In this document: positions 5,414-63,704 of the stretch, one piece after another
Layout of the letters: every line of letters starts with the position of its first letter
How positions within the stretch are numbered: position 1 is the stretch's first letter
Source of the DNA: Asterias rubens
Taxonomy: Eukaryota
Length of the DNA stretch: 64,000 bases
Reading direction: 5' to 3'
Assembly: GCF_902459465.1 (NCBI RefSeq)
Contig: NC_047076.1
Coordinates: 13,268,001-13,332,000, forward strand
The notes under the pieces: model-generated
Database searches by the model: none
What the model saw: the letters and a program-made list of their open reading frames with translations, nothing else
What the model was told of the DNA's origin: nothing
Position numbers and translations under genes: made by a program

Positions 5414-8400
5414 ATGATGGGGCTTATTCAACTTTATACCAAGATGGTTGTGGTGTTTGCTCTTATTTTTGCAGATACCTTAGGTAAGTGTAGGGCACCA
5501 GTAATAATTATCTTTCTATCTACAGAAACAATAACCTATGCCTATAAATCCACCATGATTTGTTCGAATACATCCAGCATCTACTTTGTCAGAGAATGTT
5601 ACACACTGTGTAATTCAAAACTTAACACTAAACTTCGATTTGTTATAATGTAGACCCAGTTACCGGGTGCTTTCTATTTCGAAAAAAAAAAGGAGAACGT
5701 ACAGTAGGCTATACTTGGTCTAAACTAAAAGCCTACATTAAGAATTAAGAATGTTCATTAAGTCTATGTTAAGAAATCATTTATTTGAAGCTGCTTGTAA
5801 TCTGCTTATTTGTATAGTTTGAATCTTTCTCTCAATGTACATTTTATTGTTCTCTTTAAAAAAATTACTTATGAATATATTGTTGTAATAATGATTGTTG
5901 TAGCTCACATTATCGATGACCTTTGCCCCTCGGCGGATATGACGTCGGGAAAGGAGGATGTTCAGCTGGTAACCTCTCACTTATCCGTCCATGGTGTCGA
6001 AAACGTGCTTCCGATGTGTGGCATGCAGTACATGGTACCAGTTAAGGCAACTTTGTATCAAGGAATGCTTGCTGCTAGTCAACAAGAAGGAAGCAATTTC
6101 ATGTGAGCAAAAAGTAAAATAATAATAATAAAAAAGTAGATATAGATCGCATTCCGAACCGTTGACTCAGTATTGCCCTCTTTTGTTCAGGTTCCCGGTT
6201 TGAATGTGTGTACCTCTACTCAATGCTACATCATTAATACACAATGGGAGACTTTCTGGGACGATAGAGGGCAGCAGACTTACCGGGTAAATCCATTGTT
6301 CTCAGAATTATGCGCATGTTCAGAACTACGTAAACAATGGAAATTTACCCGGTATGTCTGCTGCCACCTGGCGTTGGAAAGTCTCCTATTGCATCTACAA
6401 TATAAACATGCGAACTTAATCAATACAATCGTACACTTCTGTTTTGTTTCTGTCGTTGTATGGTTTTATAATGTAAACGCTATTCTGATATGTATTTCTT
6501 GTAATAAAAATTTTAATAAAAAAATTATATACATATAAAAATTATTTTGCATTGTTATCGAACAATGCATGTACCACTTCTATGGTCCAGTAATCCATCA
6601 TTTCATACCGAACATCCTTTGTCCTCATCACTTTACTCATATTGGTCCATAGCCACCAATTGTTTCTGAAATAGAAACTTTGATTGCTATAATTTTCCCG
6701 CTTTTTCCTGGATTCTTGCCTTAATCCCTTTCCCCTCTTTTTTCTAGAAATGAATATGTACTTTAGTTTATGCCTCTGAAGAAGGTCCAGTTTTGATCGA
6801 AAGTTAATTGGCCATCTACCCTACTCATTGTATTATATTATAAATATTTTATATGATATATACATTTTTGTAATCTTAATCGATTTATTGCAGGTTTACA
6901 AGTTCAGTGCAGCCAACTTGTGGACACAAGATAGAATCAATCAATAATGTTTATTCAAACGATCCATTTGACTGGGTTCTATTTGACTACACGACCAAGA
7001 TGCCTTCAAAAGAGGGTAAGTTGGACTTATTTTGTATGCATAGCGATTGGTTCACATGGTATTTATACTCTTTCTCCATTGGTTGACTATGTCACATGGT
7101 ATTTATACTCTTTTTCCACTGGTTGATTAAATGTCACATGGTATTCGTCCTTTTTGTATATTGGTTGATCGAATATCACATGGTATTGATCATTTTTGTA
7201 AATTGATTGATCTAATGTCACGTGTATTAATACTTTTTGTTCATTGGTTGATCTAATGTCACACGATACGAATCTTTTTTTTTTTCAGGAGTTGATTTGA
7301 TCGAAATCACCAGTGAAAGCGCTTACCTCTGGCAGTACGTAAATACATCTGCTGGTTATGATTTAAATTACACTGGTAAGGACTATGTCAAGTTTGTTGT
7401 GTAGACAATACTGCAACTAATGAAGTAGTTGTTGCAACGAAAACTTATGCATTTTCCGCAATGTAATTAGTTTTAGTCTTTACCACTACCTTTCTTAAGT
7501 TTGACAATTTCAACGGAGCGCTGTGACCACTCCTGCTTGCTCTTTCGTTCCTCAATGATGTATACTTTATACTTTGCCTATAATAAAATAGTAGACAGGA
7601 CCAAGTATTGTTTGAAGCTTTGCACGGTGTCGATACATAGGAAGAAACTAAAGTATAGATGACAACAGTATGTTTGCGAGTAAAACCACAAGGGGGGTGG
7701 TTCAGCCAACCAGGGCCCAATTTCATAGCGCTGCTTAGCGGCCGATTTTGTGCTTACTGTCCGATTTCCATTTCATAGCAATGCTAACCGTTAGCACACG
7801 AAAAGGCATGCGCATTCTAACCTTCCGGTGCTTACCGTACGAAAATAAACGACGTCACAATACAAATCCACGGTAAACACGCAATATGGCCGCCAAATTT
7901 TCCTTCTAACCTGTGAAATACGCTTGCACCTTAGCAATTGTTATGCTACAGTAAGCACGCAAAATGTGCTTACCGTTAAGCAGCGCTATGAAATTGGGCC
8001 CAGAATATTATTATTGAAACTAACAAAACGATGTTTAAGTACCCTTCTATTGTTACTTCATGTAAAGGTCCGTGCGGTGGCCCATCTACGATTGCTCTCC
8101 TGACCGTCTCCAGCGAAAACACCAACGATGCCTCCTTCGAACAAGTTTGTAGCCGGCCTATTTTGATCCAAGCCACTGGTACTACGCCTACGGCGTTTAC
8201 TCTCCTCCACGACGCAAATGACCAGTTACCAATTCATGTAAAGTAAGTGTACTAACTCAAATTAATGATCTTAATCCCTGGTGCAAATTTAACACCGTTT
8301 AAATCGTTGCGGTATCCACTGCTAAATGGGTAGGATTCGATCTGCCTCTAAAACTACCGGATAATCTCGATGGTCTATAGTTGGTAAGGCCTGCTATAAA

Positions 8401-10786: not shown

Positions 10787-11413
10787 AAAGTAAGTCCCAG
10801 GTAGGAAGATTTGGGTATATAAAAGAAATATCTCCTTTCGAATGTTCAATTGAATGGGATTTTATTCATTGAAAAAAAGAATTGATAAAGGAATTTTATG
10901 TACACAATTTTAGTTGTTATTTCTAACATAATTGAGTTGTGGTATTTTGAAAATTATCATCCTTTTTAAAGACATCCTCTACGAAACTGTAGACATGATC
11001 ATAAATCAAGTCAATAAAGGTTATTTTTTAATCCTTAGATATTTAATATCAAATATTTAAAAAAAATTACAATTCTTATCTTTGCATTTAGGGTTAGATT
11101 CGTCCTACAACTTCCTTTAATTTTGTGCTTTGCAAAAACCTCTTGCAAATGACGTCACAAAACTGAAACGGCACCCTCACTGAGTAGATCACTAAAGGAT
11201 AGTCATTGGTTGACAGTTGTATGCAGCGCGTGCATGCGAGACGTGTTTCAACTTTGACCTCAGTGATGGCGGCAGTGCAAGGGGGTTTACATGTAAACCA
11301 CTTTGATCTTCTTAATTTACTTCTACCACATGTGTACCACTTCTGGACACTATTGGTCACTCTCCAAATAATATTGTTAGCATAAAAAAAATTGATACTT
11401 ATATACTTGGTAA

Positions 11414-11999
11414 CTTTTGTTTTTACTTTTTACTTATNNNNNNNNNNNNNNNNNNNNNNNNNNNNNNNNNNNNNNNNNNNNNNNNNNNNNNNNNNNNNNN
11501 NNNNNNNNNNNNNNNNNNNNNNNNNNNNNNNNNNNNNNNNNNNNNNNNNNNNNNNNNNNNNNNNNNNNNNNNNNNNNNNNNNNNNNNNNNNNNNNNNNNN
11601 NNNNNNNNNNNNNNNNTTTTTAGACTGTTAGAGGAACCGTCGTTTGAAACCTTTGTGTCTCTTGCAAATTTTGTATTCTTATGTTTCTTTATTGCTGGTT
11701 AAGTTTATTATTTGCTTGATGGGAGGTGGTGGGGCTATTTTGCATTTGTACTTATTTTGCGTCCCTGCTTTTAACTATATTTCTGTTTTTGTCTTAATAT
11801 TCTTAATGTCTTTATAGATTTATTGTAAATAATTATAGACTTTTATGGCTAGGGATATTGGAATTGAAGGCCTTCGGGCCACAGTTTTTAGGTAAACTTT
11901 TAATTCCAAGAATATTCCCCTGGCTTTTGTTTTGTACTGTATATGTTTGTACTTTGTATGTGTTTTATGCCGAATAGATAATAATAATAATAATAATAA
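11414..11999 (+). mobile_element. Retroelement 3' fragment with a (TAA)n tail nested inside a Kolobok-type MITE; spans a gap
   Basis: The MITE is uninterrupted in copy 2 (GGTAAC|AAGCAATGG near 21129) but split here by T-rich sequence ending GAATAG(ATA)n, with TAAC duplicated at both sides. Confidence 0.55.
11438..11616. other. Assembly gap (N run)
   Basis: Ns in the sequence. Confidence 1.
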
Positions 12000-12769
12000 C
12001 AAGCAAAGGAGAGCTTTTGGTAGTATAAAACATTGTGAAAAACAGCCCCCTCTGAAGTAACGTAGTGTTTGAGAAAGGAATAATTTCACACATCAAATAT
12101 TTGAATTGATTTTGAGACCTCAGCTGGGGTCCCGAATTCAAGCATCTGAAAGCACACAACTTCGTGCGACAAGCAGGGTGGTTTTCTTCCATTATTCTCT
12201 TGCAACTTCAACGACCATTGAACTAAAAATTTCACATGTTTGTTAATAAGCATGTTTAGATTCACGACTGGTCTTTGACAATTACCAAAGGTGACCAATG
12301 CTTTAACACAACACACGGTGTAGGTAAACCCAAATTCTTAACATTTTCATATAAATGTTGTACTAAAAGGAAAGTGAAATCGCTAAGCTTCAAATAAGCT
12401 TTTAAAGCAAAAAATTGTTCACGGTTTTCTTTTAAGATTCCAAAGTTTAAGGTTTCAAGTTATCAAATTTTTTAAAATTGAGGTCAACATTTGTACATCA
12501 ACATTTTGTTATATATGACTTACAGTTAATTAACATTTGAAAAACATCGTTTTGCATTGGTAATTAAGTTACCAAATAAAATACCAATACCGGTATTTAA
12601 ATTCTTGTAAATATCTTAAATTAACAGTTTGTGTGGACAGAGCAGATTAAAACACTAAGCTTGATGTGATGATCCTAAGAAATGAATACTTTTCTCTTTT
12701 CTTTTATCGGAATATTACACACTGTAACCCCTACCAGTCCCAAGTCAAAGGTCAAATAAGGTTTTTAGT

Positions 12770-13180
12770 AGCCTCTTTAAATATCCATGTGCCCCCTGGA
12801 TTTTGAATGGCCTCTTTAAATATCCATGTGGCCCACTGGATTTTGAATTGCTTCTTTAAATATCCATGTGTCCCCCCTGAATGTTGAATAGCCTCTTTAG
12901 ATGTTCACGTGTCCCCTGGATTTTGAATGGCCTCTTATAGTATACATGTGTCCCCTGGATTTTGAATAGCTTCCTTAAATATCCTTGTGCCCCCCCCCTG
13001 TATTTTGAAAAACCATGTGTCCCCCTGGATTTTGAATTGCCTCTTTGAATATCCATGTGTCCCTAGCTAGCTGGATAGCCTTCCTTATCCTTGTGCCCCA
13101 TCCGGACCCTCTGTATTTTGAATGGCCTCTTTAAATATTCATATGTCCCCTGGATTTTGAATGGCTTCTTGAAGTATCCT
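12770..13180 (+). repeat. ~39-bp minisatellite (GTGTCCCCTGGATTTTGAATGGCCTCTTTAAATATCCAT). Homolog at 21890-22320 and remnant at 13630-13715
   Basis: Unit counted directly. It lies just downstream of the FReD stop codon on the minus strand. Confidence 0.9.
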
Positions 13181-13224
13181 TAAATGCGCCGCCAATTCAC
13201 ACCCGATACCCAAATCTAGGCCTA

Positions 13225-13481
13225 TCAGACTCGCGGTCTGATCATCATCACCGATGACTTGAGTGAGTATCCATACCCATGGAACGGGAACCAGACTACT
13301 CCCTTAGCATTCTGTCCTGCCGGTACAATACCACCTAAATATTTGCCATTGAGATTGGAGTTATGACATGAGGAATACCACCAGGCTCCTGTGTACTCCT
13401 GAGCACAGTTACCGTGCCAAAGGTCATTGTCGTGGTCAAAGGTCGAGAATTGCTGGCCATTGTGGGCAGAGTGGGCGTCAC
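13225..13481 (-). pseudogene. Orphan duplicate of the terminal exon of the FReD gene at 22372-25325
   Basis: 257-nt exon with intact AG acceptor and stop codon, differing from 22372-22628 at 6 positions by my alignment. Upstream exons are absent because homology stops at ~13635. Confidence 0.8.
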
Positions 13482-14105
13482 CTACACACAAAAAAGAAGC
13501 AAAAGTTATTACAAAACTTAGTTTTAGAATCCAAGTTGGAATTTCTTGAGTTGTCAGGGTGCGTTTTTCGGTCGTGATCAATGGGAGACTTTAGAACGGC
13601 AGGTGGCAGCAGACTAACCAGGTATCCATTTTGAATGACCTCTTTAAGAATACATGAGTTCCACTGGACCTTTAATGGCCCCTTTAACTATCCCGCTAGA
13701 TCCAGTGATTCCCATTGGATATAATGCACGTGCAGTGACATGTAGAGGCCGAAATAGTCACTGCTCTCAAGTCCGCAACTAAATTTGACTGGTATCATGT
13801 GAAACGACAGAGGTCAGAGGTCAAAATACACGCCGGTTTTGCAAATTGGCGTTATTCACGAGTCTCGACTCGAAGAATGACGTCAGACGTTCAGGCCACC
13901 CTGACCCAAGAGCTCACTCTCTCCCTAGCCCTCTCGTAGTAACGGCATGCATTTTGGGTTACCCCCAAGTGACCCACTCCACAAGCAAGACACCGGGGGC
14001 AGACCCGGGTGAGCCCCTGGAATGACGTCAAAGCTATTCGAACGCATGCACCAAAGGCAGACCGGGGTCGACCCAACGAAGCTAAACGAACGGACCGACC
14101 GACAG

Positions 14106-14400
14106 CCGATGACTTGAGTAAGTATCCATAATATGTACTTTAAAAGCCGTAACCCGCGCCATCTTGGATTGAAATTAGAAGGTCCAATGGCATGGCATCC
14201 TTGTGGAATTCAACATGATAGAGTCGTTTCAGACGTCTACAAAAAACTGACCGTCCGAACTCCTCTTACGAGTTGTCTGATTGGATGGAGTCACGAGCTA
14301 TATCTCCTTACATGTGTGGTTGTCTGGTTTTGATATGGGCCACCTGTTGGTCTAGTCCCCATTAAACGGGAACCAGACTGCTCCCTTCTGTCCTGCCGGT
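14106..14400 (-). pseudogene. Degraded, interrupted FReD terminal-exon remnant
   Basis: Minus strand 14361-14400 reads PAGQKGAVWFPFNG (cf. PAGQNAKGVVWFPFHG) and 14106-14130 reads YGYLLKSS (cf. YGYSLKSS). The two pieces are separated by about 230 bp of unrelated sequence. Confidence 0.6.
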
Positions 14401-15510
14401 GTTGCTGAGATTCGATCCCCCAAAACGGCAAGCATTGGGTGCTTTCGTTTAGCTTCCCTGGGTCGACTCCGGTCTGCCCCCGGTGCGCTCGAAATACGAG
14501 AGCGGTGAGTGGTCGTTCGTTTAGCCCTTGTCAGGGGCTCACCCGAGTGAGCACCGCGGGGTAGACCCAGGGAAGCTAATCAAACGCACCATGTCTACAA
14601 ACTTATTCTGACAGCGCCCTCTTTTACGTGCGCCTTGTTTAAAGGCTATATTTTGCCTAGTAGAAGTAGGTCACACTTATTGTAAACTTTCTCTTTTATT
14701 TGAAGTGACTCATAAAAATGTGTTGTAGTTGGTGCGAACATGATCCAGGCAAATCTAAACAGCAACCAGGATGCAGAAAACAATGAGGTAAATTCTAGGA
14801 AGTTTGCGACATCGTCATGGTTGCTTCAGCTTCGCTTAAAGACAGGGACACTATTGGTAATTGTTTAAGACCAGTCTTCTGACCAGGTTTAAGACCAGTT
14901 GGTGTATCTCAACATATGCATAAAATAACAAACCTGTGAAAATTTGAGCTCAATCGGTCGTCGAAATTGCCAGATAATAAAGGAAGAAAAACACCCTTGT
15001 CACACAGGGGGACGAAAAAAGGGAAGAAGGAGGGGCTTTTTTTTTTCTTTTCTTTTTTTCAAGATGGCCGCCACCTATTTTTTTCTTCTACTGTTCAAAC
15101 ACACAATACACAAATGAAACATGTTGGACAAGACATTAAACAAAAAGTTATTTGTTGTTTTTTAAGTGGCTGCCCGACACAGCTGTTAAGTTAAATTGCT
15201 GGGCTATTCCACAAAACTCTTTTCTTGCTGAGACCGTTTAAATATGCAAACAATAAATCCTTTTTCCGTTTACAAAAAAACCATAAAAAATGTATATACA
15301 TTTTTTTTTAAATGAGGAAAAAGTAGGCGGCCTCTTTAAAGGAAGTGGGCAAGGACGCTTTGTCTACTTGTCCTTAATATCGCAATTTTGTTCTGTTGAG
15401 AAGTTTTGAAAGGCATTCAAAGCCGAGAGAAAAGTTATTGATATAGAATTTGACCTTCGTGTGTGCAGTGCATTCCAAATGAAAACAGTTGTTGTATATT
15501 ACAATGATGT

Positions 15511-15520
15511 GGGATTTTCC
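15511..15520 (+). promoter_or_regulatory. NF-kappaB/Rel consensus site (GGGATTTTCC) upstream of paralog B
   Basis: Matches GGGRNWYYCC, 210 bp before the ATG, at the position homologous to the paralog A site. Confidence 0.45.
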
Positions 15521-15720
15521 CCTTGAAGCACCTTTACAGCAGGCTTATAAAAACGCCCTACAAAACTATCCCACGTTCATTTCCCTCCCGGACGTGCATT
15601 GTGAGCGGTTGTATAGTTAACTTTACTTCTAAGAATATAACTACCACTTGATCACTGATCAATTTAATCAGTTTATTCTGTCAAGTCATCATCAATCTTC
15701 CTAAAGCTACGACTCAATTG

Positions 15721-18700
15721 ATGATGGGGCTTCTTCAGACTTCTTCCAAGATGGTTGTGATGATATTTGCTCTTCTTGTTGCAGCTACATTAGGTAAGTG
15801 TGGGGCACCATGGCTAGATGTTAAAATTATCTTTCGTCAGAAAACATTAAACCACTATACTTATCCACCACCACTTCTCTGTTTAAATACACACTGGGCA
15901 CTATTGGTAATTGTCAAAACCACACTTCTCACTTTGTGTATCTCAACACATGCATAAAATGTCAAACCAGTGAAAATTTGAGCTCAATTGGTCGTCGAAG
16001 TTGTGTGCTTTTAGATGTTTGGTTTCGGGACTCAAACAGAGGTCTCGAAATCAAATTAATTTTTGTTTAGTAATAAATAACTTCTTCAACTATATACACG
16101 TCACTTCAGAGGGAACCGTTTCTCATAATGTTTGATACTCTCAACATCTCTCAATTGCTTTTTATCAAGTAAGTTTTTTATGCTAACAACTATTTTGAGT
16201 AATAGTGTCCAGGGCCTTTAAAGTTAAAAAAATATACTGAAATGATACTTGAGTATATAAAATGTGTTTTTGATCTGTGAGCTTTCGACTGATATGTGTG
16301 TGCCTACATGAGAAAACGAAACGCTTTCTTTCGGGTAATGAAAAAGAAACGAAAATGTAACCAGTATACAATTGTTTCTTGTTGTAGCCGACAACGTTGA
16401 TGACCTTTGCCCCTCGGCGGATATGACGTCAGGAACGGGGGACGTTCAGCTGGTAAACTCTTACCTATCCGTTGATGGTGTCGAAAACGCGCTTCCGCTG
16501 TGTGGCATGCAGTACATGGTACCAGTTAAGGCAACTTTGTATCAAGGAATGCTTGCTGCTAGTCAACAACAAGGAAGCAATTTCATGTAAGAAAACAAAC
16601 ATCAAAAATAAAATTAAGAACGGAATGAAAGAGAAATAACAAAGAATGAAACACCCATTCTCTGTAGACAAACAGACGCACACACGCACTCAAGCTTGTT
16701 TACACCTGGCAACCGTGGACCTCCTATAATTGTCTTTTGTACACGTTTGCAACCTAACCGTGAACCTTTGCCGAACGTGGAGTTATTTTCCCCCTTTGTT
16801 ATAGGTGACTGGTTTGAATGTGTATCCTCAAATTTTTCAGCAACCATCTTAAGTGTTATATATTATTCTACATCACCTTATTTACGTAAACGGTGAGCAG
16901 GTGTGTACCCCTAACATGCGGACATACATTTCTTTTTACCCCCTTTGAATTTCTGTTTTTTTAGACGCAATTTTCCCGGCTGGTATTAATTATACATTAT
17001 ATATTTTATTTTTTATCGCAATCGATGTCCTTTCAGGTTTACAATCGGTCCAGTGCATCCAACTTACGGACACTTTATTGAATCAATCAATAGTGTTTCT
17101 TCAAACGATCCGTTTTACTGGATTCTGTTTGAAAACGCAACCAAGATGTCTTCGCAAGTGGGTAAGTTGGACTTATCTTTATACATAGCGATTGGTTCAC
17201 ATAGTATTGATACTCGTTGTCCATTGGTTGACTATGTCACCTGATATTAATACGCTTTCTCCATTGGTTGATCGAATGTCACGCGGTATTGATACTCTTT
17301 GTCCATTGGTTGATCTAATGTCACATGTTCTTTGTCCATTGGTTGACCTTATACCACGTGATATTAATGCTCTTGGTCCATTGTTTGATATAATGTCACG
17401 TGGTATTAATACTCTTTCTCCATTGGTTGATGTAATGTCACACGGCATTGATACTCTTCGTCCATTGTACTCTAATGTCACATGATATTGATAGTCTTTG
17501 TCCATTGGTTGATCTTCTATCAATAGTGTTAATACTTTTCGTCCATTGGTTGATTTAATGTCACACGGTACTCATACTCTTTGTCCATTGGTTGATCGAA
17601 TATCACATGGTATTGGTACTCTTTGTCAATTGGTTTATCTAATGTCACATGATACGAATCCGATTCTGTTTTTTTTCTTTTCTCTCAGGTGTTGACTTTA
17701 TTGACATCACTAGCGAAAGCGCTTACCTCTGGCAGTACGTAAATACATCTGCTGGCCATGATTCAAACTACACTGGTAAGGACTATGTCAAGTTTAATTT
17801 TGTAGGCACAACACCGCACCTATCGAACTAGTTGTTGCAACGAAAGCCATGCATGTTTAAATGTATTAGTTAGTCTTAAAGTGCCACCACTACCCTTTTT
17901 AAGTTTGGACATTGTATAAACGTAGCGCTGTGACGTCTTCTTGATTGATCTATTGTTCCTCATTGATGTACACTTCCAACTCTGCCTAATATGCTCAGCA
18001 TGAAATATCTTCCTTGTTCAAAACAGGCTTACAAACCAAATTTCCAGTTGGTGCATATTGCTTGTCACTGGTATTCAGCTGTTGTTTGCTTATCCTAAAA
18101 ACGTGGAAATTTGGTTGGTAATCCTGTTTTTATCAAAGGGAGAAACTTCATGCTTACAGGTTATGAAATTGGGCCCAGGTATTAAAGTCACCTGGAAGTG
18201 GTATTTTTCAAAATAAAGCTTTTGTCACTAATATATGAGTTTTGATGAGTGGAATGTGAATAAACAGTTAACTAAGGTTTTAAACAATCAGTTCTTATGT
18301 TATTTACAAATTTAAGAGTAGACCCCGACCCGAGAGGGCGCTGTTCGTGACGTAAATCAAGGCAGACTTTGCCTGTAATGCGTAGAGTGAACACAGTTGC
18401 AAAGTTCATGTACGGACCAAGTCGTGAGTTTGTACGTTTAAAAAAAAATAAAAAATGTTTTTTGAAATGTACCAATTCACGACTTGGACGTACATGTACT
18501 TTGCACGTGTGTTTACTATACGCATTGCAGGCAAAGTCTGCCTCGATTGACGTCACAAAAGGGGTAGGCGGAGTCAGCCCCCCAAACAACTTTATATATT
18601 TTTTAAACATATAAATCGTGACAAACAATTACTAAACAAATTGTTTTATTGTTCGTAAGCATATACTCTTATGTTTGAAAGACAAAAAAATCTATTTCCA

Positions 18701-20561
18701 GGTGACTTTAAGTATTGGTTGAAGCTTTGCATGGTGTGGATACAATATTATGAGGAAACTGTATACATTATAATAGTAAACTTTCGAGTACAACCAATAA
18801 GAGGAGAAGGTACAGCCGTTTGTTGAAGACGAGCATAGTCTACTTTGAAACGTCGAGACCACAGCGGCTCTTCGAAGAGCCAACACTCACACAAAAGAGA
18901 TTTACATGGTTGTTCACGAAAGTTTACTATTAGTTTCTTCCTAGAGAGACCGATATTTGAAACTAACACATCGATGTTGACCTTGCTATTGTTACTTCAT
19001 GCAAGGTCAGTGCGGTGGTCCATCTGTGATTGCTCCAACCATGCCACTATTGTATAAAGTCGCGTTCCTGACCTTCTCAAGCGAAAACACCAACGATGGC
19101 TTCGAACAAGTCTGTAAGCGACCTGTTTTGATCCAAGCCACTGGTACTACGGCATTCGATCTTCTCCAAGACGCAAATGACCAGTTACCAATCTATGTCA
19201 AGTAAGTGTACCAACCAAAATTAACAAGCTTTATCCCAGGTGCAAATGTTTTAAATCGTTGTGGTTCCCGTTGCTAAAACATAGAATTCGAACTGCCTTT
19301 AACTACCGGGAAATCTCGGTGGTCTATAGTTGGTAAAGACATCTTCTCTAGATTTTCAAAGGTCGTGGGTTCGAATCCCACCAGGTAATAAGCCTGCGAT
19401 TGTTTTTCCAAAGGTATATTGTACACAGTGCTAACACACATTGGTGCTAGGGTAAAACAAAAATTAATATACTATATTCCCATGGCAAATTAAACATCTT
19501 AAGTGTACACGTTTTTTTAAATTACAGTAATGCTTTGACGATAATGCACAACAGATTATTTTTTTATTTCGAATAGTAATTTGTGCGTGCATTTATTTTC
19601 TTCAAGGGCGGTTCTTGATATGCAAATGAACACAGTGACGGAGATTAACGGAGTGCCCAATGTCGACGGAAAAGCTTGGACTGGGTACTACGCGGGTTCC
19701 AATATGATGATACCTAACGGTAAGAGTTTTCATTAGTTATGAGGTTTAAAGAAATTCCAGATCGAGCAGCTGCACTAATACACGCCCTCTTGTGTCAGTT
19801 AATTGCGAGTCCAGTGAATTGCTGATCGGAACCCGAGCCTGAATATCTGTATGTCACAATTACGTTCCGATATAATCACCTTTGACCTCACATTACTTTA
19901 CATGGCGTTCATGGTTCTGGAAATTTGCGGTTAAATCCGACGTACATGGGTATACATAGCCAAGGTGCATGCTGGTCTAGCTAGCGATAAGGGCCCAATT
20001 TCAGAGAGCTGCTAAGCACAAAACATTTCTTAGCATGACATTTCTTCCTTGATAAAAACAAGATTACCAACCAAATTTTCTACGTGGGTTTTCAGCGGGA
20101 TAAGCAAACGACAGCTGCATACCAGTAACAAGCAATATGCAACACATTTGGTGGGTAATCCTGTTGTTGTCTAGGAAGAAATTTCATGCTAAGCAAAAGT
20201 TGGTGCTTAGCAGCTCTATGAAATTTGATTTGATATGAGGTTTGATCGCTAGCTAGACCAGCATGCACCTCATTCAATAGTAAGCGCGTGCTCAATGGAT
20301 GTTTTAATGCGAATAGGTCTTTGAAATGCATTTTGTAAATAATGTCATAACATGTCACATGAAATAATATACAGTTTGTTTTGTTTTTGCTTCATAGATC
20401 TGGCGATGACGAATGTCAGCAATGGGGATCATGTCGTCTTCCGTTATGAAGAAGTGGATGGTGAAAATGATCCTGGAAATGTTGGGGCGCCCTCTGCTGG
20501 TCAACACATCAATCTGCTCTATGCAGTGATGTTGTTGACAACGGTGATGCCTTTGATATAA
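15721..20561 (+). CDS. Paralog B of the GPI-anchored double transcobalamin-beta/DUF4430-domain protein (318 aa). Exons 15721-15793, 16388-16586, 17037-17161, 17689-17775, 19006-19201, 19607-19719, 20398-20561
   Basis: GT-AG introns, 957 nt open frame. Domain 1 core FTIGPVHPTYGHFIESINSVSSNDPFYWILFENATKMSSQVGVDFIDITSESAYLWQY matches the beta-domain pattern (YG.FI.SINGV...YW.....QVGV..Y). It has the same exon phases as paralog A and a GPI-like tail. Confidence 0.87.
17190..17650 (+). repeat. 42-bp minisatellite (CCATTGGTTGATCTAATGTCACATGGTATTGATACTCTTTGT), ~11 units. About 5-6 units at 7045-7265 and ~5 units at 23305-23490
   Basis: Unit counted directly. Confidence 0.9.
18182..18711. mobile_element. 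TTAA-flanked MITE (TTAAAGTCACCTGGAA..TTCCAGGTGACTTTAA) in intron 4 of paralog B
   Basis: TIRs and TTAA flanks. Absent from paralog A. Confidence 0.75.
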
Positions 20562-22371
20562 AAAGTAAGTCCCAGGTAGGAAGATTTGGGTATATAAATG
20601 ACATAATTATCTCGATTTGAATGTTCAATTGAATGGGATTTTATTCATTGAAAAAAGGAATTGATAAAGGAATTTTATGTACACAATTTTAGTTGTTATT
20701 TCTAACATAATTGAGTAGTGGTATTTTAAAAATTATTATCCTTTTAAAAGACATTCTCTACGAAACTGTAGACATGATCTTAAATCAAGTCAATAAAGGT
20801 TATTTTTTATTCCTTAGATATTTAATATCAAATGTTTTTACAAAATTACAATTGTTATCTTTGCATTTAGGGTTAGATTCGTCCTACAGCTTCCTTTAAT
20901 TTTGTGCTTTGCAAAACCCTTGCATATGATCAATAAAGGATAGTCATTGGCTGACAGTTGTGTGCGTATACGTGTTTCAACTTTGACCTCAGTGATGGCG
21001 GCAGTGCAAGGGAGTTTACATGTAAAACACTATGATCTTCTTAATTTACTTCTACCACATGTGTCTTAAAGGCACTGGACACTATTGGTCATTCTCCAAA
21101 TAATATTGTTAGCATAAATACTTACTTGGTAACAAGCAATGGAGAGCTTTTGGTAGTATAAAACATTGTGAGAAACAGCCCCCTCTGAAGTAGCGTAGTT
21201 TTTGAGAAAGGAATAATTTCACACATCAAATATTTGAATTGATTTTGAGACCTCAGCTGAGGTCCCGAATTCAAGCATCATAAAGCACATAACTTCGTGC
21301 GACAAGCAGGGTGTTTTTCTTCCATTATTCTCTTGCAACTTCAACGACCATTTAACTAAAAGTTTCACATGTTTGTTAATAAGCATGTTTAGATTCACGA
21401 CTGGTCTTTGACAATTACCAAAGGTGATCACTGCTTTAACACAACACACGGTGTAGGTAAACCCAAATTCTGACCATTATTTTTTATATAAATGTTGTAC
21501 TAAAAGGAAAGTGAAATCACTAAGCTTCAAATAAGCTTTTAAAGCAAAACATTTTTCACGGTTTTCGTTTAAGATTCCAAAGTTTAAAATTTCAAATAAT
21601 CAAAGTTTTGAGGTCAACATTTATACATCAACATTTTATTATCTATGACTTACAATTAATTAACATTTGAAAAACATCGTTTTGCATTGGTAATTAAGTT
21701 ACCAAATAAACTACCAATACCGGTATTTAAATTCATGTTAATATCTTAAATTAACAGTTTGTAGACAGAGCAGATTAAAACACTAAGCTGCGATGATCCT
21801 AAGAAATGAATACTTTTCTCTTTTCCTTATCGGAATATTACACACTGTAACCCCTACCCGTCCCAAGTCAAAGGTCAAATAAGGTTTTGAGTAGCCTCTT
21901 TAAATATCCACGTGCCCCCTGGATTTTGAATGGACTCTTTAGGTATACATGTGTCCCCCTGGATTTTGAATGGCCTCTTTAGGTGTTCACGTGTCCCCTG
22001 GATTATGAATGGCCTCTTATAGTATACATGTGTTCCCTGGATTTTGAATAGCTTCTTTAAATATCCTTGTGCCCCCCCCCCCTGTATTTGTAATGGCCTC
22101 TTTAAAAACCCATGTGTCCCCCTGGATTTTGAATTGCCTCTTTGAATATCCATGTGTCCCTAGCTGGCTGGATAGCCTTCCTTATCCTTGTGCCCCATCC
22201 GGACCCTCTGTATTTTGAATGGCCTCTTTAAATATTCATGTGTCCCCTGGATTTTGAATGCCTTCCTTAAATATCCTTGTGCCCCATCCGGATCCCCTGT
22301 ATTTTGAATGGCTTCTTGAAGTATCCTTAAATGCGCCGCCAATTCACACCCGATACCCAAATCTAGGCCTA

Positions 22372-25325
22372 TCAGACTCGCGGTCTGATCATCATCACCG
22401 ATGACTTGAGTGAGTATCCATACCCATGGAACGGGAACCAGACTACTCCCTTAGCATTCTGTCCTGCTGGCACAATGCCGCCTAAATATTTGCCATTGAG
22501 ATTGGAGTTATGACATGAGGAATACCACCAGGCTCCTGTGTACTCCTGAGCACAGTTACCGTGCCAAAGGTCATTGTCGCGGTCAAAGGTCGAGAATTGC
22601 TGGCCATTGTGGGCAGAGAGGGCGTCACCTACACACACACAAAAAGCAAAAGTTATTACAAAACTTAGTTGTAGAATCCAAGTTGGAATTTCATGAGTTG
22701 TGAGGGTGCGTTTTTTGGTCGTGATCAAAAGGCCAGAGACTTTGGAACGGCAGGTGGCAGCAGACAAACCAGATATCCATTGTTTACATTGTTCTGAGCA
22801 TGCGCACAATTCTAAGAACAATGGATTTACCTGGTAAGTCTGCTGCCACCCAGAGTTCCTAAAAGTCTCAACTGTTTCGGTTGCATTGTCCATTGGTTTG
22901 TCACTGGGCGATGACTGAAACAGTTATTGGTTTACACAGCCATTAAACGGGCATTTTTTTATGACGTCATGAAGCACCACCAAGTGACTGATAAAAAATT
23001 ACCTGCTGGACCTCCTGTGAAACCAGCCACTCGCAACGTGTAGTTTGTGGCCTCACTCCCTACATAGAAATGCCTGTAGTGAGCCTCGACGAATGTGAAC
23101 TGCCAATCCTCCAAAATAACGAGTAGTTCGTAACGATTTTGTGCCGATAGGGCGTGAATCACCTCGTTCCCAAGCCACATCTCTCCCGAGTTATAACCGA
23201 ACCCATTTCTGTAGGAGAGCCAGTCACGGAAGAATTCTTTGCGCCCATTGACACGACGGTGAATCACCTAAGGCGTAAATATAAAAATAAATCAAAAAAA
23301 CAAGAATATTACTCTGTGTCCATTGGTTGATCTACTGTCACATGGAGGTGTTACTCTTTGTTCATTGGTTGATCTTAAGTCACATGGTGTTGCTGAAATC
23401 TTTGTTCATTGTTAATCTAATGGTGATATATCCTTTGTCCATTGGTCGATCACATGGTATTGATACTTTTTGTTCATTGGTTGACCGAATTTACAACAAC
23501 ATGTATTGATATTATTTTAAAAACCATTTCTAGCCAAATTATTTGGCGCGTATGACCAGTGCCTGCGGAGAAAGACATGGGACCAGTATAAATAAATTAT
23601 TGTTTCAACTATTGGTAGATTTTGCTCATTGCAAGGGTATGGCCGGTATTGGTTTCATCATGGTTGTATACACATGTACATCGGCGTAAACTGCGAATCT
23701 GACACCATGGGATTGGATGTGAGGTCAAAGGTGAATATGGCATGTCTCGAAGTCTGGTGAATCACGGAGAAAAGAATGTTGACCCTGTCCATGGTTGAAT
23801 GGAATGCTTTTAATGTTTAAGCTTATTGATTATTAGTTATCGATTATCTTACCGTCCATCCACCGCCTTGCTGTGATTGATCACAGAACACTCTGATTGG
23901 CTTACAACGTTCGGAGAATGCTGGGAAAACTGTGTATATACCGTCACGCCCACCACCAAGTTCCCGGATGTCTTGACAATTTGTCGGCATATGTACAGGA
24001 GCTGTTTCATACAGAAGAACACACAACGTCGTTATATAAAGAAACGCCGGTATAATGAAATGCTGATGAAAACACAACCGTATAAAGAAACAACCGTACA
24101 AAGAAACAACCGTTTTTTAAAGGAACACGTTGCCTTGGATCGGTCGAGTTGGTCTTTGAAAAGCGTTCTGTAACCGTTTGTTAGAAAGTCGATATGGTTA
24201 GAAAGATGTTGTAAAAGTAGAATACAATGACCTACACAAATATGCCTTGAAATTGCATGGTTTTCTTTTTACCTCGTCGACTTACACGGTCGGCCATTTA
24301 TGGGAGTCAAGTTTTTGACTCCCATAAATGGCCGACCGTGTTAGTTCGCGACGTAAAATGAAAACCGTGCAATTTTGAGTGATACTTGTGTGGATCATTA
24401 TATTCTACTTCTAAAACATCTTTCCAACCATATACATTTCATAACAAACAGTTTCAAACGCTTTTTATAGACCAACTCGTCCGATCCAAGGCAACGTGTT
24501 CTTTTAAGTAAGAACGGTATAAAGACACAACCGTTTGGTATAAAGTAAGAACGTTATAAAGAAACAACGTTTAAGACATAAAGGTATTTTATTTCTGCAA
24601 ACTTAGGCTGTATTCCAGTTTAAATGTTATATAAGAAGAAGACATACAATTGATTTCGAAACCTTGTTAGATTTTGGACTCAATCCCTGTCCGTTTTCAC
24701 TGTGCCTATACACGGTGATATTCACGCGAATAAAGCGTTTCAAAGACTTATACGAAGACCCAAACTCGCCGCATCGTAACATTGTGTCTTTTGAGATAGC
24801 TAGTGCTAGAAATTGACATGGAGTGATGCAACTTCAATTTTTACTACATCGCCTAGCAAATAATTGTTCCAGAATAAAAACAAAAATAAAAAAAATGATG
24901 AGCAAATACTTACATCCACCAGCAGCCGCGTTGTATACCCCTCCACAGCAAGTCTTATCAGCGTTGGTTACGATGGTTGGTCCGCCGGCCGTCGGTCCAC
25001 TTGGACTGAACGGGGCGAACGGGCCTTCCGGTGTACCCACAGCCGGTCCACCCACAGCCGGTCCACCGACGCTAGGACCACCGCCCCCGGTAGTGGGGCC
25101 TGAACCCGGGCCCGAACCCGGACCAACACCCGGACCCGAACCCGGGCCCGAACCCGGGCCCGAACCCGGGCCCGAACCCGGACCAACACCCGGACCCGAA
25201 CCCGGACCCGAACCCGGACCCGAACCCGGACCCGAACCTGGACCCGAACCTGGACCCGAACCGGGGCTCTGTGAAATCGTATGAAAGGCGCATAGCAGCA
25301 CCACTAACAACCCAACAGTCCACAT
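22372..25325 (-). CDS. Secreted fibrinogen-related (FReD/ficolin-like) protein 1 with a Gly/Ser/Pro repeat spacer (360 aa). Exons 25325-24914, 24001-23853, 23267-23003, 22628-22372
   Basis: GT-AG introns in phases 1,0,1 and a 1083 nt open frame. Signal peptide MWTVGLLVVLLCAFHTIS. FBG motifs NCQDI..VFCDQ..GGGWTVIHRR..GFG..GEMWLGN..FSTFDRDND..NCA..GAWWYSSCHNSNLNG..MMIRP. Confidence 0.92.
24117..24507. mobile_element. TTAA-flanked MITE with a central perfect hairpin, in intron 1 of FReD1. Degenerate relative at ~56020-56195
   Basis: TIR TTAAAGGAACACGTTGCCTTGGATCGG and central palindrome CACGGTCGGCCATTTATGGGAGTCAA-G-TT-TTGACTCCCATAAATGGCCGACCGTG. Confidence 0.8.
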
Positions 25326-52418: not shown

Positions 52419-53459
52419 ATGGAGACTAACACCTCAGAAACGATAACAGAATGGGCTTCTAACTACCGATGGGATGCTATTATTGTGCTGCAGTTTTTAG
52501 CAGCCATTACAGGCGTCTTTGGTAACTTTTTGGTGATAGTCGTTTACGTTTACCGCCAACGTATGAGGAACACCACCAATGCTTTCATTGTGAATCTTGC
52601 AGTTGCCGATTTGATTACATCGTTGTTGATAATACCCTTACCAAGGTATTCTAACATTCCACAGTCTTGGCATGGACGAATGTACTGTAAACTGATTTTC
52701 AGTTCCGTATTCATGTGGACTTCTATAGTGGCGTCACTTTTAACACTGACTTTGGTGTCTTTGGAGCGGTATTGCGCCGTGGTGCATCCAGTGAGATACC
52801 GGGTGATTTTTTCCAAGAGGAGACCTAAAATCATCATTGGTTGTACGTGGTTAAGTGCTTTGATTATAAACACATTCCAACTGTATGTTGTTGATCTTAA
52901 AGATGGAATGTGTCAGAATGTATGGCCAAGTGTTGGTTTTCGGTATTTTATTGCTACATCAGTTTACATTTTTGAGTTTTTCGCGCCAATGATAGTGATG
53001 CTTACTGCTAACATTATTACGGTACGGACTCTGAAGACCCAAGCAAGGGCTCTTCTTGCACGGGACCAATCGCGCTTTAGCCCGGCGTACTCACTCCTCG
53101 AAGCACGCAAGAAAGTCATTGAACTCCTGTTCATAGTCGTGATCACTTTCATCATTTGCTGGGCACCCGATCAATTCGCTTTCTTTATCTATCATTTCGG
53201 TGTAGTTCCTGAGACCTACCTTGACGGGATTTTGTATAGGTTGTTTGTTCTCCTCGCCTTTGCCAATTCGTGTTTGAACCCCATCATCTACGCGTTCAAA
53301 AATAAACATTTCAGGCATGGTTTTATGAATATGTTTCGAGGAAGAGGCAATCGAGTCGGGAGTAACGCTGAGTCGGTCGCAGCAGATGAAGAATTCAATA
53401 CACCGAACGCAGTGTTACGGACAGCCCGAACGAAAGCTGTTTCTACCGTGCAACGATGA
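52419..53459 (+). CDS. Intronless rhodopsin-like (class A) GPCR, galanin/allatostatin-A-receptor-like orphan type, 346 aa
   Basis: Seven hydrophobic segments with GN (TM1), NLAVADL (TM2), ERY (TM3), CWAP (TM6), NSCLNPIIY (TM7) and an N-terminal NTS sequon. Confidence 0.95.
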   Translation: METNTSETITEWASNYRWDAIIVLQFLAAITGVFGNFLVIVVYVYRQRMRNTTNAFIVNLAVADLITSLLIIPLPRYSNIPQSWHGRMYCKLIFSSVFMWTSIVASLLTLTLVSLERYCAVVHPVRYRVIFSKRRPKIIIGCTWLSALIINTFQLYVVDLKDGMCQNVWPSVGFRYFIATSVYIFEFFAPMIVMLTANIITVRTLKTQARALLARDQSRFSPAYSLLEARKKVIELLFIVVITFIICWAPDQFAFFIYHFGVVPETYLDGILYRLFVLLAFANSCLNPIIYAFKNKHFRHGFMNMFRGRGNRVGSNAESVAADEEFNTPNAVLRTARTKAVSTVQR

Positions 53460-61049: not shown

Positions 61050-61217
61050 NNNNNNNNNNNNNNNNNNNNNNNNNNNNNNNNNNNNNNNNNNNNNNNNNNN
61101 NNNNNNNNNNNNNNNNNNNNNNNNNNNNNNNNNNNNNNNNNNNNNNNNNNNNNNNNNNNNNNNNNNNNNNNNNNNNNNNNNNNNNNNNNNNNNNNNNNNN
61201 NNNNNNNNNNNNNNNNN
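61050..61217. other. Assembly gap (N run)
   Basis: Ns in the sequence. Confidence 1.
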
Positions 61218-61499: not shown

Positions 61500-63383
61500 T
61501 TTCATTTTATCACAGCATGCAAAAGAAAGATCTCATTTTCCTTTGTGCCGGTAACTCCTCGAGCCGGGCTACGTCCCGTAGCCTTAGATCTCAAGGGTCT
61601 TTCTCAGGATCCTCGCTGTTCCCAAAAGCGCTGCCTTCTGTAATAGATCTACCCTCACATTTGTCCCTATTTCATCTAGATGTTTCCCCAGTGCTTTGGG
61701 AATGGTGCCAAGTGCTCCAACCACCACGGGGACTACTTTTACCTTTACCTGCCAAATCTTACGAAGTTCCCTGGCCAGGTCCTGGTACTTCTCGATCTTT
61801 TCCATCTCCTTCGAAGCTACCCTTATATCACCTGGCACAGCTATGTCAATGAGATGACACATCTTCTTCGTCTTATCTAATAGCACAACATCCGGACGCC
61901 TATGTTGTATAACATGATCGGTCTGAATGTTAAAGTCCCATAGGATCTTGACCTGGTCGTTCTCTACAACTTTCTCCGGAACATGGTCGTACCATTTCGC
62001 AAGTACTTTGACACCATACTTCTTACACAGATCCCAGTGAATCACCTTGGCCAGCTTGTCATGTCTTCCTTTGTACTCCGTCTGGGCCATCTTACTGCAT
62101 TCGCTAACAATATGAAATACAGTCTCCTCTGCTTTATTGCACATTCTACACATAGGAGAGGACGTTTGCTTTCTCTATCCTTGCCTTCATTACATTTGTC
62201 CTTAGAGACTGGTCTTGCGCCGCAGTAATCAAGCCCTCTGTTTCCTTCTTTAGTTCGCCACTCTTTAACCAATTCCATGACTTGCTGCTGGCCACTTCCT
62301 CAGTACACCTCAAGAACCGGCCATGAAGTGGTTTGTTCCTCCAATCTTGATGTCTTTCCTCCTTCCTTTCCCTCTTGTACTCTTTCGGCCCAACTTCGTC
62401 TGCCCTCGTGTACCTTTGTGCAACTTTCAACAAGCTCTCCTCGGTCCTTCTGACATGACAATGCAAGCTTCTGCACTCGATGTTAACACTGTCCGCCACG
62501 CTAAGCAACCCCCTTCCGCCCTCTGACCTCGGAAGATAGAGTCTACTAACATTTGACCGCGGGTGTAGCATGCCATGCATGGTCATTAGTTTTCTTGTCC
62601 TCCTGTCAGTGACATCTAGATCTTCCTTAGTCCACTCGACAATACCCGCACTGTACCTCATCAAAGACACGGCCCATGTGTTAATCGCCTTAATCATGTT
62701 CCCCCCGTTTAGTTTAGACTTCAAACATTTCTTTACACGCCTGATGTATTCTGCCTTCAGCCTTACCTTTGATTCCTTGTGAAGGACATGGTCCGATTCA
62801 AGTACACCAAGATACCGATAACTCTCCTCCTCACCCAAAGCCCTCAACTGTGCACCATCTGGCAGAGCAATGCCATCGGAATGTACCCTCTTCCCCCTCT
62901 TCATGGTCATTGAAGCACATTTCTCCAGACCGAACTGCATCCCAATGTCATCACTGAAAATCCTGACGGTCTGCACCAAAGAGTCGATCTCGGCCTCATT
63001 CTTCGCAAACAACTTCAAATCGTCCATAAAAAGCAGATGGTTGATCTTACATCCGTCCTTCTTCATTACATAACCTGCACTCACCTTCCTTAGAATCATC
63101 GACAGGGGCATCATCGCAAGAACAAACAGCAGCGGAGACAGAGAGTCACCTTGGAAAATACCTCTTCTTATGCATACCTTGCCCAGATTATCATCGTTGG
63201 CTGTCAGATTTGTTCGCCACGTCTTCATGCTCTCACCTAAAAGACGTTTTACTGCATCAGCCACTCCAACCATATCCAGACATTCCATTATCCATGTGTG
63301 CGATACCATGTCATACGCCTTCTTGTAGTCAATCCACGCCATTGCCAAATTAGTCTTTCTGCTCCTGCAGTCCTTCAGTACAG
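61500..63383 (-). mobile_element. Non-LTR retrotransposon of the RLE group (R4/Dong-like): RT, CCHC zinc knuckle and PD-(D/E)xK endonuclease. The 5' part is lost in a gap
   Basis: ORF 63348-62146 contains WIDYKKAYD, RGIFQGDSLSPLLF, HLLFMDDLKL and YRYLGV. ORF 62153-61584 contains CRMC..ETVFHIVSEC, RHD, WDFNIQTD..RRPDVV..IDIAVP..KIEKY. A single +1 frameshift separates them. The 3' UTR ends in (TAA)7. Confidence 0.92.
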
Positions 63384-63704
63384 NNNNNNNNNNNNNNNNN
63401 NNNNNNNNNNNNNNNNNNNNNNNNNNNNNNNNNNNNNNNNNNNNNNNNNNNNNNNNNNNNNNNNNNNNNNNNNNNNNNNNNNNNNNNNNNNNNNNNNNNN
63501 NNNNNNNNNNNNNNNNNNNNNNNNNNNNNNNNNNNNNNNNNNNNNNNNNNNNNNNNNNNNNNNNNNNNNNNNNNNNNNNNNNNNNNNNNNNNNNNNNNNN
63601 NNNNNNNNNNNNNNNNNNNNNNNNNNNNNNNNNNNNNNNNNNNNNNNNNNNNNNNNNNNNNNNNNNNNNNNNNNNNNNNNNNNNNNNNNNNNNNNNNNNN
63701 NNNN
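63384..63704. other. Assembly gap (N run)
   Basis: Ns in the sequence. Confidence 1.

Follow-up and report, generated by a model that had tools for sequence, protein, structure and literature searches.

Tandem sea star genes for alpha-less, double transcobalamin-beta-type proteins with a predicted GPI-attachment signal: candidates for vitamin B12 capture at the cell surface

We analysed a window of 64,000 nucleotides (nt) from the sea star Asterias rubens (NC_047076.1, positions 13,268,001 to 13,332,000, forward strand; coordinates below are those of the window), in which the open stretches within 5414-20561 form two parallel series. Frame-consistent choice of splice sites resolves them into two tandem paralogues, genes A and B, each with seven exons and canonical GT-AG introns in phases 1, 2, 1, 1, 2, 1. 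Gene A (5414-10786) has an intact spliced coding sequence (CDS) of 930 nt, translated into 309 amino acids (aa), and gene B (15721-20561) one of 957 nt, translated into 318 aa; the two proteins are identical at 252 positions of a 321-column alignment. Each protein consists of a signal peptide, two domains of ~120-130 aa and a hydrophobic C-terminal tail. No third copy was found by tblastn within the 64-kb window (n = 2 copies). The original prediction, made from the DNA letters, spoke of two intact genes. Both CDSs are indeed intact, with seven exons, and transcribed, but gene A is altered at positions that are invariant in the family and carries a 10-residue deletion in its second domain. The prediction also started gene B at a TTG at 15718, which gives way to an ATG at 15721.

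The exons are listed below with the RNA evidence that bears on each. This evidence comes from Logan contigs of four RNA runs, two from the same species (X1 and X2, with 0 differences in many pieces) and two from a close relative (X3 and X5). Contigs were placed on gene A at 96% likeness, which kept B transcripts out.

5414..5483, plus strand: gene A exon 1 (splice model), start codon and signal peptide; junction 5483 to 5904 in X1 and X2 contigs
5904..6102, plus strand: gene A exon 2, first strands and helix of domain 1; RNA contigs over 5919-6044 with 0 differences
6894..7015, plus strand: gene A exon 3, domain 1 core, with CGHK and FDW in place of the family-invariant YGHF and aromatic-W; junction 7015 to 7289 in RNA
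7289..7375, plus strand: gene A exon 4, end of domain 1 (GVD...YLWQY); junctions 7015 to 7289 and 7375 to 8068 in X1 and X2
8068..8242, plus strand: gene A exon 5, start of domain 2, with the 10-residue deletion relative to B and all relatives; RNA contigs over 8067-8242 with 0 differences
8624..8736, plus strand: gene A exon 6, domain 2 core; junctions 8242 to 8624 and 8736 to 10623 in RNA
10623..10786, plus strand: gene A exon 7, end of domain 2, small-residue cluster, hydrophobic tail and stop; junction 8736 to 10623 in X2
15721..15793, plus strand: gene B exon 1, start codon and signal peptide; junction 15793 to 16388 in X1 and X2
16388..16586, plus strand: gene B exon 2, first part of domain 1 (65 aa), the query that retrieved the family
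17037..17161, plus strand: gene B exon 3, domain 1 core (YGHFIESINSV...FYWILF), which aligns with the intrinsic factor beta domain via the family profile; junctions 16586 to 17037 and 17161 to 17689
17689..17775, plus strand: gene B exon 4, end of domain 1; junctions in RNA contigs
19006..19201, plus strand: gene B exon 5, start of domain 2; junction 17775 to 19006 in 4/4 RNA runs
19607..19719, plus strand: gene B exon 6, domain 2 core (TVTEINGV...AWTGYY); junction 19201 to 19607 in 4/4 RNA runs
20398..20561, plus strand: gene B exon 7, end of domain 2 (NGDHVVFRY), G-A-P-S-A-G cluster, 15-residue hydrophobic tail and stop; junction 19719 to 20398 in 4/4 RNA runs

All six junctions of gene B were recovered precisely where predicted; the junction into exon 7 and two others occur in all four runs, and the 5' untranslated region is contiguous with exon 1 in the RNA contigs. 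For gene A, five of the six junctions occur in X1 and X2 among the joints listed. The sixth, from 6102 to 6894, is implied by a 459-nt contig over exons 5, 4 and 3 that runs 47 nt past 6894; its gene B counterpart likewise continues onto exon 2. Among the joints listed for A or B, the contigs contain no alternative ending in place of exon 7. Genes A and B are both expressed, and exon 7 is used in both, as the original prediction had supposed.

To place the two proteins in a family, gene B exon 2 was searched against 1.84 billion representative proteins. Six matched: P0001 (576 aa), P0002 (321 aa), P0004 (324 aa), P0005 (317 aa) and two fragments. A family profile search returned three proteins and added P0007 (512 aa). 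Over its full length, the closest orthologue, P0002, shares 78% identity with B and 67% with A; used as a query against the same collection, it returned only itself, and the products of genes A and B are apparently absent from that collection. Two members carry automatic sea urchin names, P0005 being "uncharacterized protein LOC129277499 [Lytechinus pictus]" and P0007 [quoted passage not shown] (in UniRef, "DUF4430 domain-containing protein"). With 33-36% identity, the urchin proteins are true family members, and the seven-exon layout is repeated at the P0004 and P0005 loci. Judged by these sequences, the family is conserved in sea stars and sea urchins. P0002 itself (GCA_014845345.1, L001 1005-1970) is encoded by one uninterrupted open reading frame (ORF) without introns on a 3.3-kb contig; either the contig derives from a transcript and was placed in a genome record, or the ORF is a retrocopy.

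Pfam assigns domain 1 to PF14478 (DUF4430), the family that covers the C-terminal region of the Tcn proteins (PMC4350170). Against a gathering score of 23.8 bits, domain 1 scored 37.8 bits in P0001 (E = 2.6e-9), 37.0 bits in P0007 (4.6e-9) and 24.0 bits in P0005 (5.5e-5). The expected membership in PF14478 is thus found in domain 1 of these three proteins, but domain 2 has no Pfam match in family members and P0002 stays below the threshold. PF01122 (Cobalamin_bind, the alpha6/alpha6 barrel) matched no family member in Pfam. An AlphaFold2 model of P0002, computed from a small family alignment together with the exon pieces of the window, likewise has no helical domain, and its signal peptide (residues 1-25) adjoins domain 1. 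The alpha domain is absent from the family proteins.

The P0002 model has a mean predicted local distance difference test score (pLDDT) of 74.7 and a predicted template modelling score (pTM) of 0.67, with a pLDDT of ~90 in domain 2. In both domains, two strands are followed by a helix and then by four more strands. Foldseek searches of the PDB with this model retrieved transcobalamin (TC), intrinsic factor (IF) and the isolated TC beta domain with a probability of 1.0 (template modelling score 0.72-0.73 by target). They also matched tandem ubiquitin-like proteins at very high root-mean-square deviation (rmsd), because the model has two beta-grasp-like domains in series. With VIA-align, domain 2 (P0002 176-283) superposed best on IF (Z 15.2, 1.8 A over 104 residues), followed by TC-beta (14.2) and haptocorrin (HC; 14.1), with many TC entries at Z 13.5-14.1, bacterial DUF4430 protein 3u7z at 11.8 and unrelated beta-grasp folds below 8. 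Over the TC, IF and HC beta domains, the rmsd was 1.8-2.0 A across 97-104 residues, at Z 13.5-15.2. Domain 1 (P0002 32-150) was matched by Foldseek to the Swiss-Prot models of TCN2 (318-426) and IF (302-416), again with a probability of 1.0. Modelled by itself, domain 1 came out less well (pLDDT 63.5) than as part of the full model, and the top 13 matches of this separate model were all TC or IF (Z 5.1-6.2), followed by 3u7z and then noise. In the family profile, the consensus "yGhfitsing..yyw" lies over "WGLVVSSINN..TYW" of IF, and the segments invariant across echinoderms (GHF, IN, W, GVD, Y) are found where the alignment covers the IF beta core. Matches of the domain 2 profile to ATG10 were at chance level and were rejected. 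Taken together, Pfam and Foldseek for domain 1 and superposition at Z 14-15 for domain 2 bear out the original proposal of an alpha-less protein with two transcobalamin-beta domains. As modelled on the orthologue, both domains have the beta-domain fold of the TC structures and are of the transcobalamin-beta type (DUF4430).

The two domains had also been described as ~130-aa repeats. BLASTP detected no similarity between half 1 and half 2, but profile comparison and the shared fold support the likeness: profile-profile comparison (hhalign) of cleanly cut halves gave 89% probability (E = 2.3e-6, 74 columns), and tool-made alignments of the halves gave 78%. The helices, the "IN-G-V...W" core and the final "x-F/W-x-Y" strand aligned in register, and intron positions match between the aligned halves. 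Since the phases run 1-2-1 twice, each domain corresponds to a cassette of three exons, with a phase 1 intron in front and introns of phases 2 and 1 inside. We conclude that the two-domain unit arose by an old duplication of this cassette, which predates the split between sea stars and sea urchins because both have the two-domain unit. At the P0001 locus (L002 10001-18232, GCA_015706575.1, another sea star), 13 exons encode 576 aa comprising a single signal peptide, four domains of the beta type and a single hydrophobic tail, and two six-exon units lie within 420 bp without a signal-peptide exon in between. P0001 is probably a genuine four-domain protein, and its two-domain unit has been duplicated within one gene, not as a pair of genes. 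This locus is flanked by two Fibrinogen_C genes, in the same relative position as in the window.

Both ends of the proteins match the original prediction, which had a signal peptide at the start and a hydrophobic tail ending at the stop codon in A and B. The N-terminus is a typical signal peptide (MMGLLQTSSKMVVMIFALLVAATLA followed by D), and the family proteins have 3-8 N-glycosylation sequons and four invariant cysteines. Gene B ends in ...DPGNVGAPSAGQHINLLYAVMLLTTVMPLI-stop, that is, a small-residue cluster and a short spacer, after which the protein closes with 15 uncharged residues, most of them hydrophobic; across A and B, the hydrophobic C-terminus spans 15-17 residues without a cytoplasmic part. 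A small-residue cluster, a short spacer and a terminal hydrophobic run make up the classical layout of a glycosylphosphatidylinositol (GPI) attachment signal. By alignment and a rule-based check, the tail has this shape in every full-length family member, and full-length relatives keep the layout with different sequences. For an ordinary membrane span, the tail would have to be longer and lie further from the C-terminus; A and B are probably GPI-anchored, as predicted from this layout.

The hydrophobic tail might instead serve as a transmembrane or tail anchor, or be retained or cleaved in another way, which would make the proteins integral membrane or soluble secreted binders. This reading draws on the way in which the GPI call was made, by alignment and a home-made rule check that is a rule of thumb rather than a validated predictor, which counts against the GPI assignment; the rule-based scan also failed to place a clean omega site in P0007, and several members had only short spacers by the rule. 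Against it, the uncharged run, which contains Thr and Pro, reaches 13-18 residues in 6/7 tails (5 in P0001b, where one Asn interrupts), stops exactly at the C-terminus without basic or cytoplasmic residues, and is preceded by small-residue clusters from sea stars to sea urchins (GAPSAG, GGASSAG, SSNA, GSSG, SSG). We consider a tail of this other kind unlikely.

The two paralogues have not evolved alike. Between A and B, the Nei-Gojobori method gave a synonymous divergence (dS) of 0.20 and a ratio of non-synonymous to synonymous divergence (dN/dS) of 0.47; comparison with the P0002 CDS gave dN/dS values of 0.38 (A) and 0.27 (B). Both are under constraint. When P0002 serves as the outgroup, 36 amino-acid changes are unique to A and 11 to B (binomial p = 3.5e-4), so that A has evolved about three times faster. 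It alters residues that are invariant in all other members (YGHF to CGHK, FYW to FDW, VGVD to EGVD), CGHK adding a fifth cysteine. A 10-residue segment present in B, APTMPLLYKV, is missing from A; in the P0002 model, the first strand of domain 2 begins within it. Exon 3 has the highest dN (0.19; dN/dS 0.58), and its divergence is mostly change in the A lineage; positive selection on this exon was considered and is not shown by this crude test. In exons 6-7 (19607-20561 vs 8624-10786), dS falls to 0.09 and 0.03, against 0.3-0.5 in exons 3-5, and this very low divergence suggests recent gene conversion over the 3' part of the pair. B is the conservative copy, while A may be shifting in specificity or slowly decaying.

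Genes A and B lie in a collinear duplicated block of ~8-9 kb, copy 1 spanning ~5246-13630 and copy 2 15551-22781. The following features mark the block and its surroundings.

5121-5163: perfect (GGGTTA)7 (TAACCC on the other strand), an interstitial telomere-type repeat ~250 bp upstream of the gene A start
7052-7263: 42-bp minisatellite in intron 3 of gene A, 5.1 copies
11013..11018, plus strand: AATAAA signal 3' of gene A, with a homologous counterpart 3' of gene B at 20792
11438..11616, no strand: assembly gap (N) in the 3' flank of gene A, inside a 611-nt stretch specific to copy 1
12762-13009: 39-bp tandem repeat, ~6 copies, just downstream of the fibrinogen-related exon region between genes A and B
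13225-13581, minus strand: Fibrinogen_C (fibrinogen-related) terminal exon
17197-17651: 42-bp minisatellite in intron 3 of gene B, 11.2 copies
21887-22328 (approximate): diverged counterpart of the 39-bp repeat
22372-22893, minus strand: Fibrinogen_C terminal exon
39226-39675, plus strand: Fibrinogen_C terminal exon

An assembly gap between two collinear copies could signal an artefact, in which A and B are two haplotypes of a single gene placed in tandem beside the gap. The gap, however, starts 650 nt past the gene A stop and ~420 nt past the AATAAA at 11013, and it is held by the 611 extra bases of copy 1 (11386-11997), where copy 2 is continuous. It thus sits within a copy-specific insert rather than at a block boundary, and the exons and introns of neither gene are affected. 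Haplotypes of one gene are also hard to square with the dS of 0.20 and 62.5 non-synonymous differences between A and B, with indels in exon 5, with six of six intron lengths unequal (e.g. 1886 vs 678 nt), with 5 against 11 copies of the intron 3 minisatellite, with the asymmetric rates relative to the outgroup, and with transcription of both forms in the same RNA runs. The artefact is therefore hardly credible, and on the strength of divergence, indels, intron lengths, asymmetric rates and co-transcription we rejected it. The 42-bp minisatellite accounts for long spurious ORFs on both strands of intron 3. The three Fibrinogen_C exons gave E-values of 1e-16 to 1e-25; since the first two lie inside the duplicated block, the ancestral gene of the A/B pair was copied with at least the last exon of a fibrinogen-related domain (FReD) gene.

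What might such proteins bind? The zebrafish proteins Tcnba and Tcnbb, which consist of the beta domain only, were reported by Benoit and colleagues in 2018 to bind cobalamin with high affinity, comparable to that of Tcn2. To our knowledge, every functionally tested protein with a TC-beta domain binds corrinoids. The isolated TC beta domain retains cobalamin, which is freed only by extensive washing, and holds cobinamide in the same pocket (PMC5599065), and of the three interfaces in TC, that between cobalamin and the beta domain is the most favourable, at ~560 square angstroms (PMC11107200). As the isolated TC-beta domain and Tcnb bind without an alpha domain, corrinoid binding by the echinoderm domains may be predicted by analogy, with a chance that is about even or slightly better. 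In the scheme that we propose, genes A and B would each give rise to a secreted glycoprotein with a signal peptide, two TC-beta domains and a GPI-attachment-type signal, and its anchor would hold the mature protein in the outer leaflet of the plasma membrane. At least one of the two beta domains would bind a corrinoid, vitamin B12 or an analogue, much as the isolated TC-beta domain and Tcnb do. In this way, the cell could take scarce B12 out of food, coelomic fluid or sea water, either to internalise it or to keep it away from microbes. The original prediction had likewise inferred a receptor or scavenger role for the tethered protein. In this scheme, A would be a fast-evolving copy with an altered binding surface and second domain. 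As a whole, a surface-tethered double-beta corrinoid binder seems to us about as probable as not.

Several results weigh against this proposal. Single-exon translations from the window had no Pfam match and no PDB sequence match, although we do not count these searches against homology because the pieces are too short. Domain 1 of the closest orthologue, P0002, scored only 19.4 bits (1.5e-3), below the PF14478 gathering score. The structural model is that of P0002 and not of the window proteins, and was built from a shallow alignment. In searches of PDB sequences, the best match of the domain 1 profile was the IF beta domain, in register, at a non-significant E of 0.11, and the domain 2 profile had no significant match. 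Identity to TC-beta is only 12-16%, a distance over which ligand specificity could have changed. DUF4430 outside vertebrates is, as far as we know, a family of unknown function.

These sequence distances leave room for proteins that share the fold but bind no corrinoid, and that would act, secreted or at the cell surface, as recognition or adhesion molecules for another ligand, such as another tetrapyrrole or a microbial or matrix component, perhaps with a functional tie to the fibrinogen-related genes nearby, which are of immune type. The fold, a variant of beta-grasp, is similar to ubiquitin-like domains as well, Fibrinogen_C genes surround the family genes both in the window and in another sea star, and the faster copy A changes the segments aligned with the ligand-facing part. 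Yet TC, IF, HC and bacterial DUF4430 stand far above generic beta-grasp folds in the superpositions (Z 12-15 vs < 8), the functionally tested TC-beta-domain proteins of which we are aware all bind corrinoids, the echinoderm-invariant segments lie in the IF beta core stretch, and gene neighbourhood carries little functional weight in animals. Another ligand is accordingly the less probable reading, though by no means a remote one.

Within the corrinoid-binding proposal, it is conceivable that one chain clamps a single corrinoid between its two beta domains, the second beta replacing the alpha domain. A bolder extension, which we regard as improbable, is that in echinoderms, and perhaps cnidarians, such a GPI-anchored beta-beta clamp receptor would provide alpha-independent, membrane-bound uptake of B12, with A adapted to corrinoids of other kinds or caught up in a contest with microbes. 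If true, this clamp system would differ from the relay of carrier and receptor in vertebrates (IF-cubilin, TC-CD320), which it might predate.

Compared with vertebrate TCN2, TCN1 and CBLIF, the A/B proteins share the beta-domain fold in both domains, membership of domain 1 in PF14478, and the nature of secreted glycoproteins with a signal peptide. They differ in the missing alpha6/alpha6 domain, in having two beta domains instead of one and a hydrophobic tether where the vertebrate proteins are soluble, and in sequence, at the 12-16% identity given above. Because it has no alpha domain, the A/B family lies outside the canonical TCN1/TCN2/IF family. Short, DUF4430-only Tcn-like proteins exist in teleosts (PMC4350170). 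The fish Tcnba and Tcnbb are alike in being alpha-less with a DUF4430/TC-beta domain, but they have a single beta domain and are soluble, whereas the echinoderm proteins have two domains and a membrane-tether signal. By these two features of their architecture, A and B are not of the fish Tcnb type.

Bacterial DUF4430 proteins provide another parallel. The Ruminococcus gnavus protein 3u7z has the same fold (the Z of 11.8 above), and bacterial multi-DUF4430 proteins with LPXTG or dockerin likewise tether such modules on the surface, but through a sortase or dockerin anchor instead of a GPI-type signal; they, too, are uncharacterised. The nearest shapes in the ESM Atlas were bacterial surface-anchored proteins of this kind, often multi-DUF4430 with LPXTG or dockerin. 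Some bacterial DUF4430 proteins carry a prenyltransferase-like alpha-alpha toroid, which would correspond to the alpha domain. By features, the nearest clusters were small DUF4430 clusters of molluscs and chordates. In the AlphaFold DB, two-domain "Transcobalamin-like C-terminal domain-containing" proteins are present (A0A6S7GH52, 352 aa; A0A7M5UAP2, 274 aa), a whole-model alignment extended over both domains (query 2-307 vs target 18-314, E = 8.7e-14), and a 185-aa uncharacterised protein aligned to domain 2 and the tail. The two-domain proteins among these and the urchin LOC752620 and LOC129277499 resemble A and B in having two domains, and are known by automatic annotation only. Folate receptor alpha, a GPI-anchored, high-affinity folate binder of the outer leaflet that is internalised with its ligand, shares with the proposed system its logic only, as an analogy; its fold and ligand are unrelated to those of A and B.

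The original prediction knew of no description of this architecture. A full-text literature search found no paper on the two-domain tethered architecture or on any invertebrate member, but urchin homologues in NCBI and UniProt and two-domain AlphaFold DB proteins already exist under automatic names. The architecture is thus present in databases by automatic name while, as far as searched, undescribed and uncharacterised.

Invertebrate acquisition and distribution of B12 are largely unknown, the carrier-receptor relay having been worked out in vertebrates only, and the A/B family would be a concrete candidate for how echinoderms capture B12. That a beta domain can work without an alpha domain, so far shown only in fish, would then hold more widely, and the family would reveal a second route to a two-lobed binder, through two betas rather than alpha plus beta. 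The ectodomain, of ~260 residues, is small and easy to express, and since the differences between the paralogues fall precisely in the segments aligned with the ligand face, the pair offers a natural system for binding specificity. If binding fails, the family would still represent a new eukaryotic use of the DUF4430 fold.

Two other coding stretches lie further along the window.

52419-53459, plus strand: intronless ORF of 346 aa for a rhodopsin-family G protein-coupled receptor (7tm_1, E = 3e-48)
62146-63348, minus strand: reverse-transcriptase ORF (RVT_1, E = 4e-19) of a retroelement, between assembly gaps at 61050-61217 and 63384-63704

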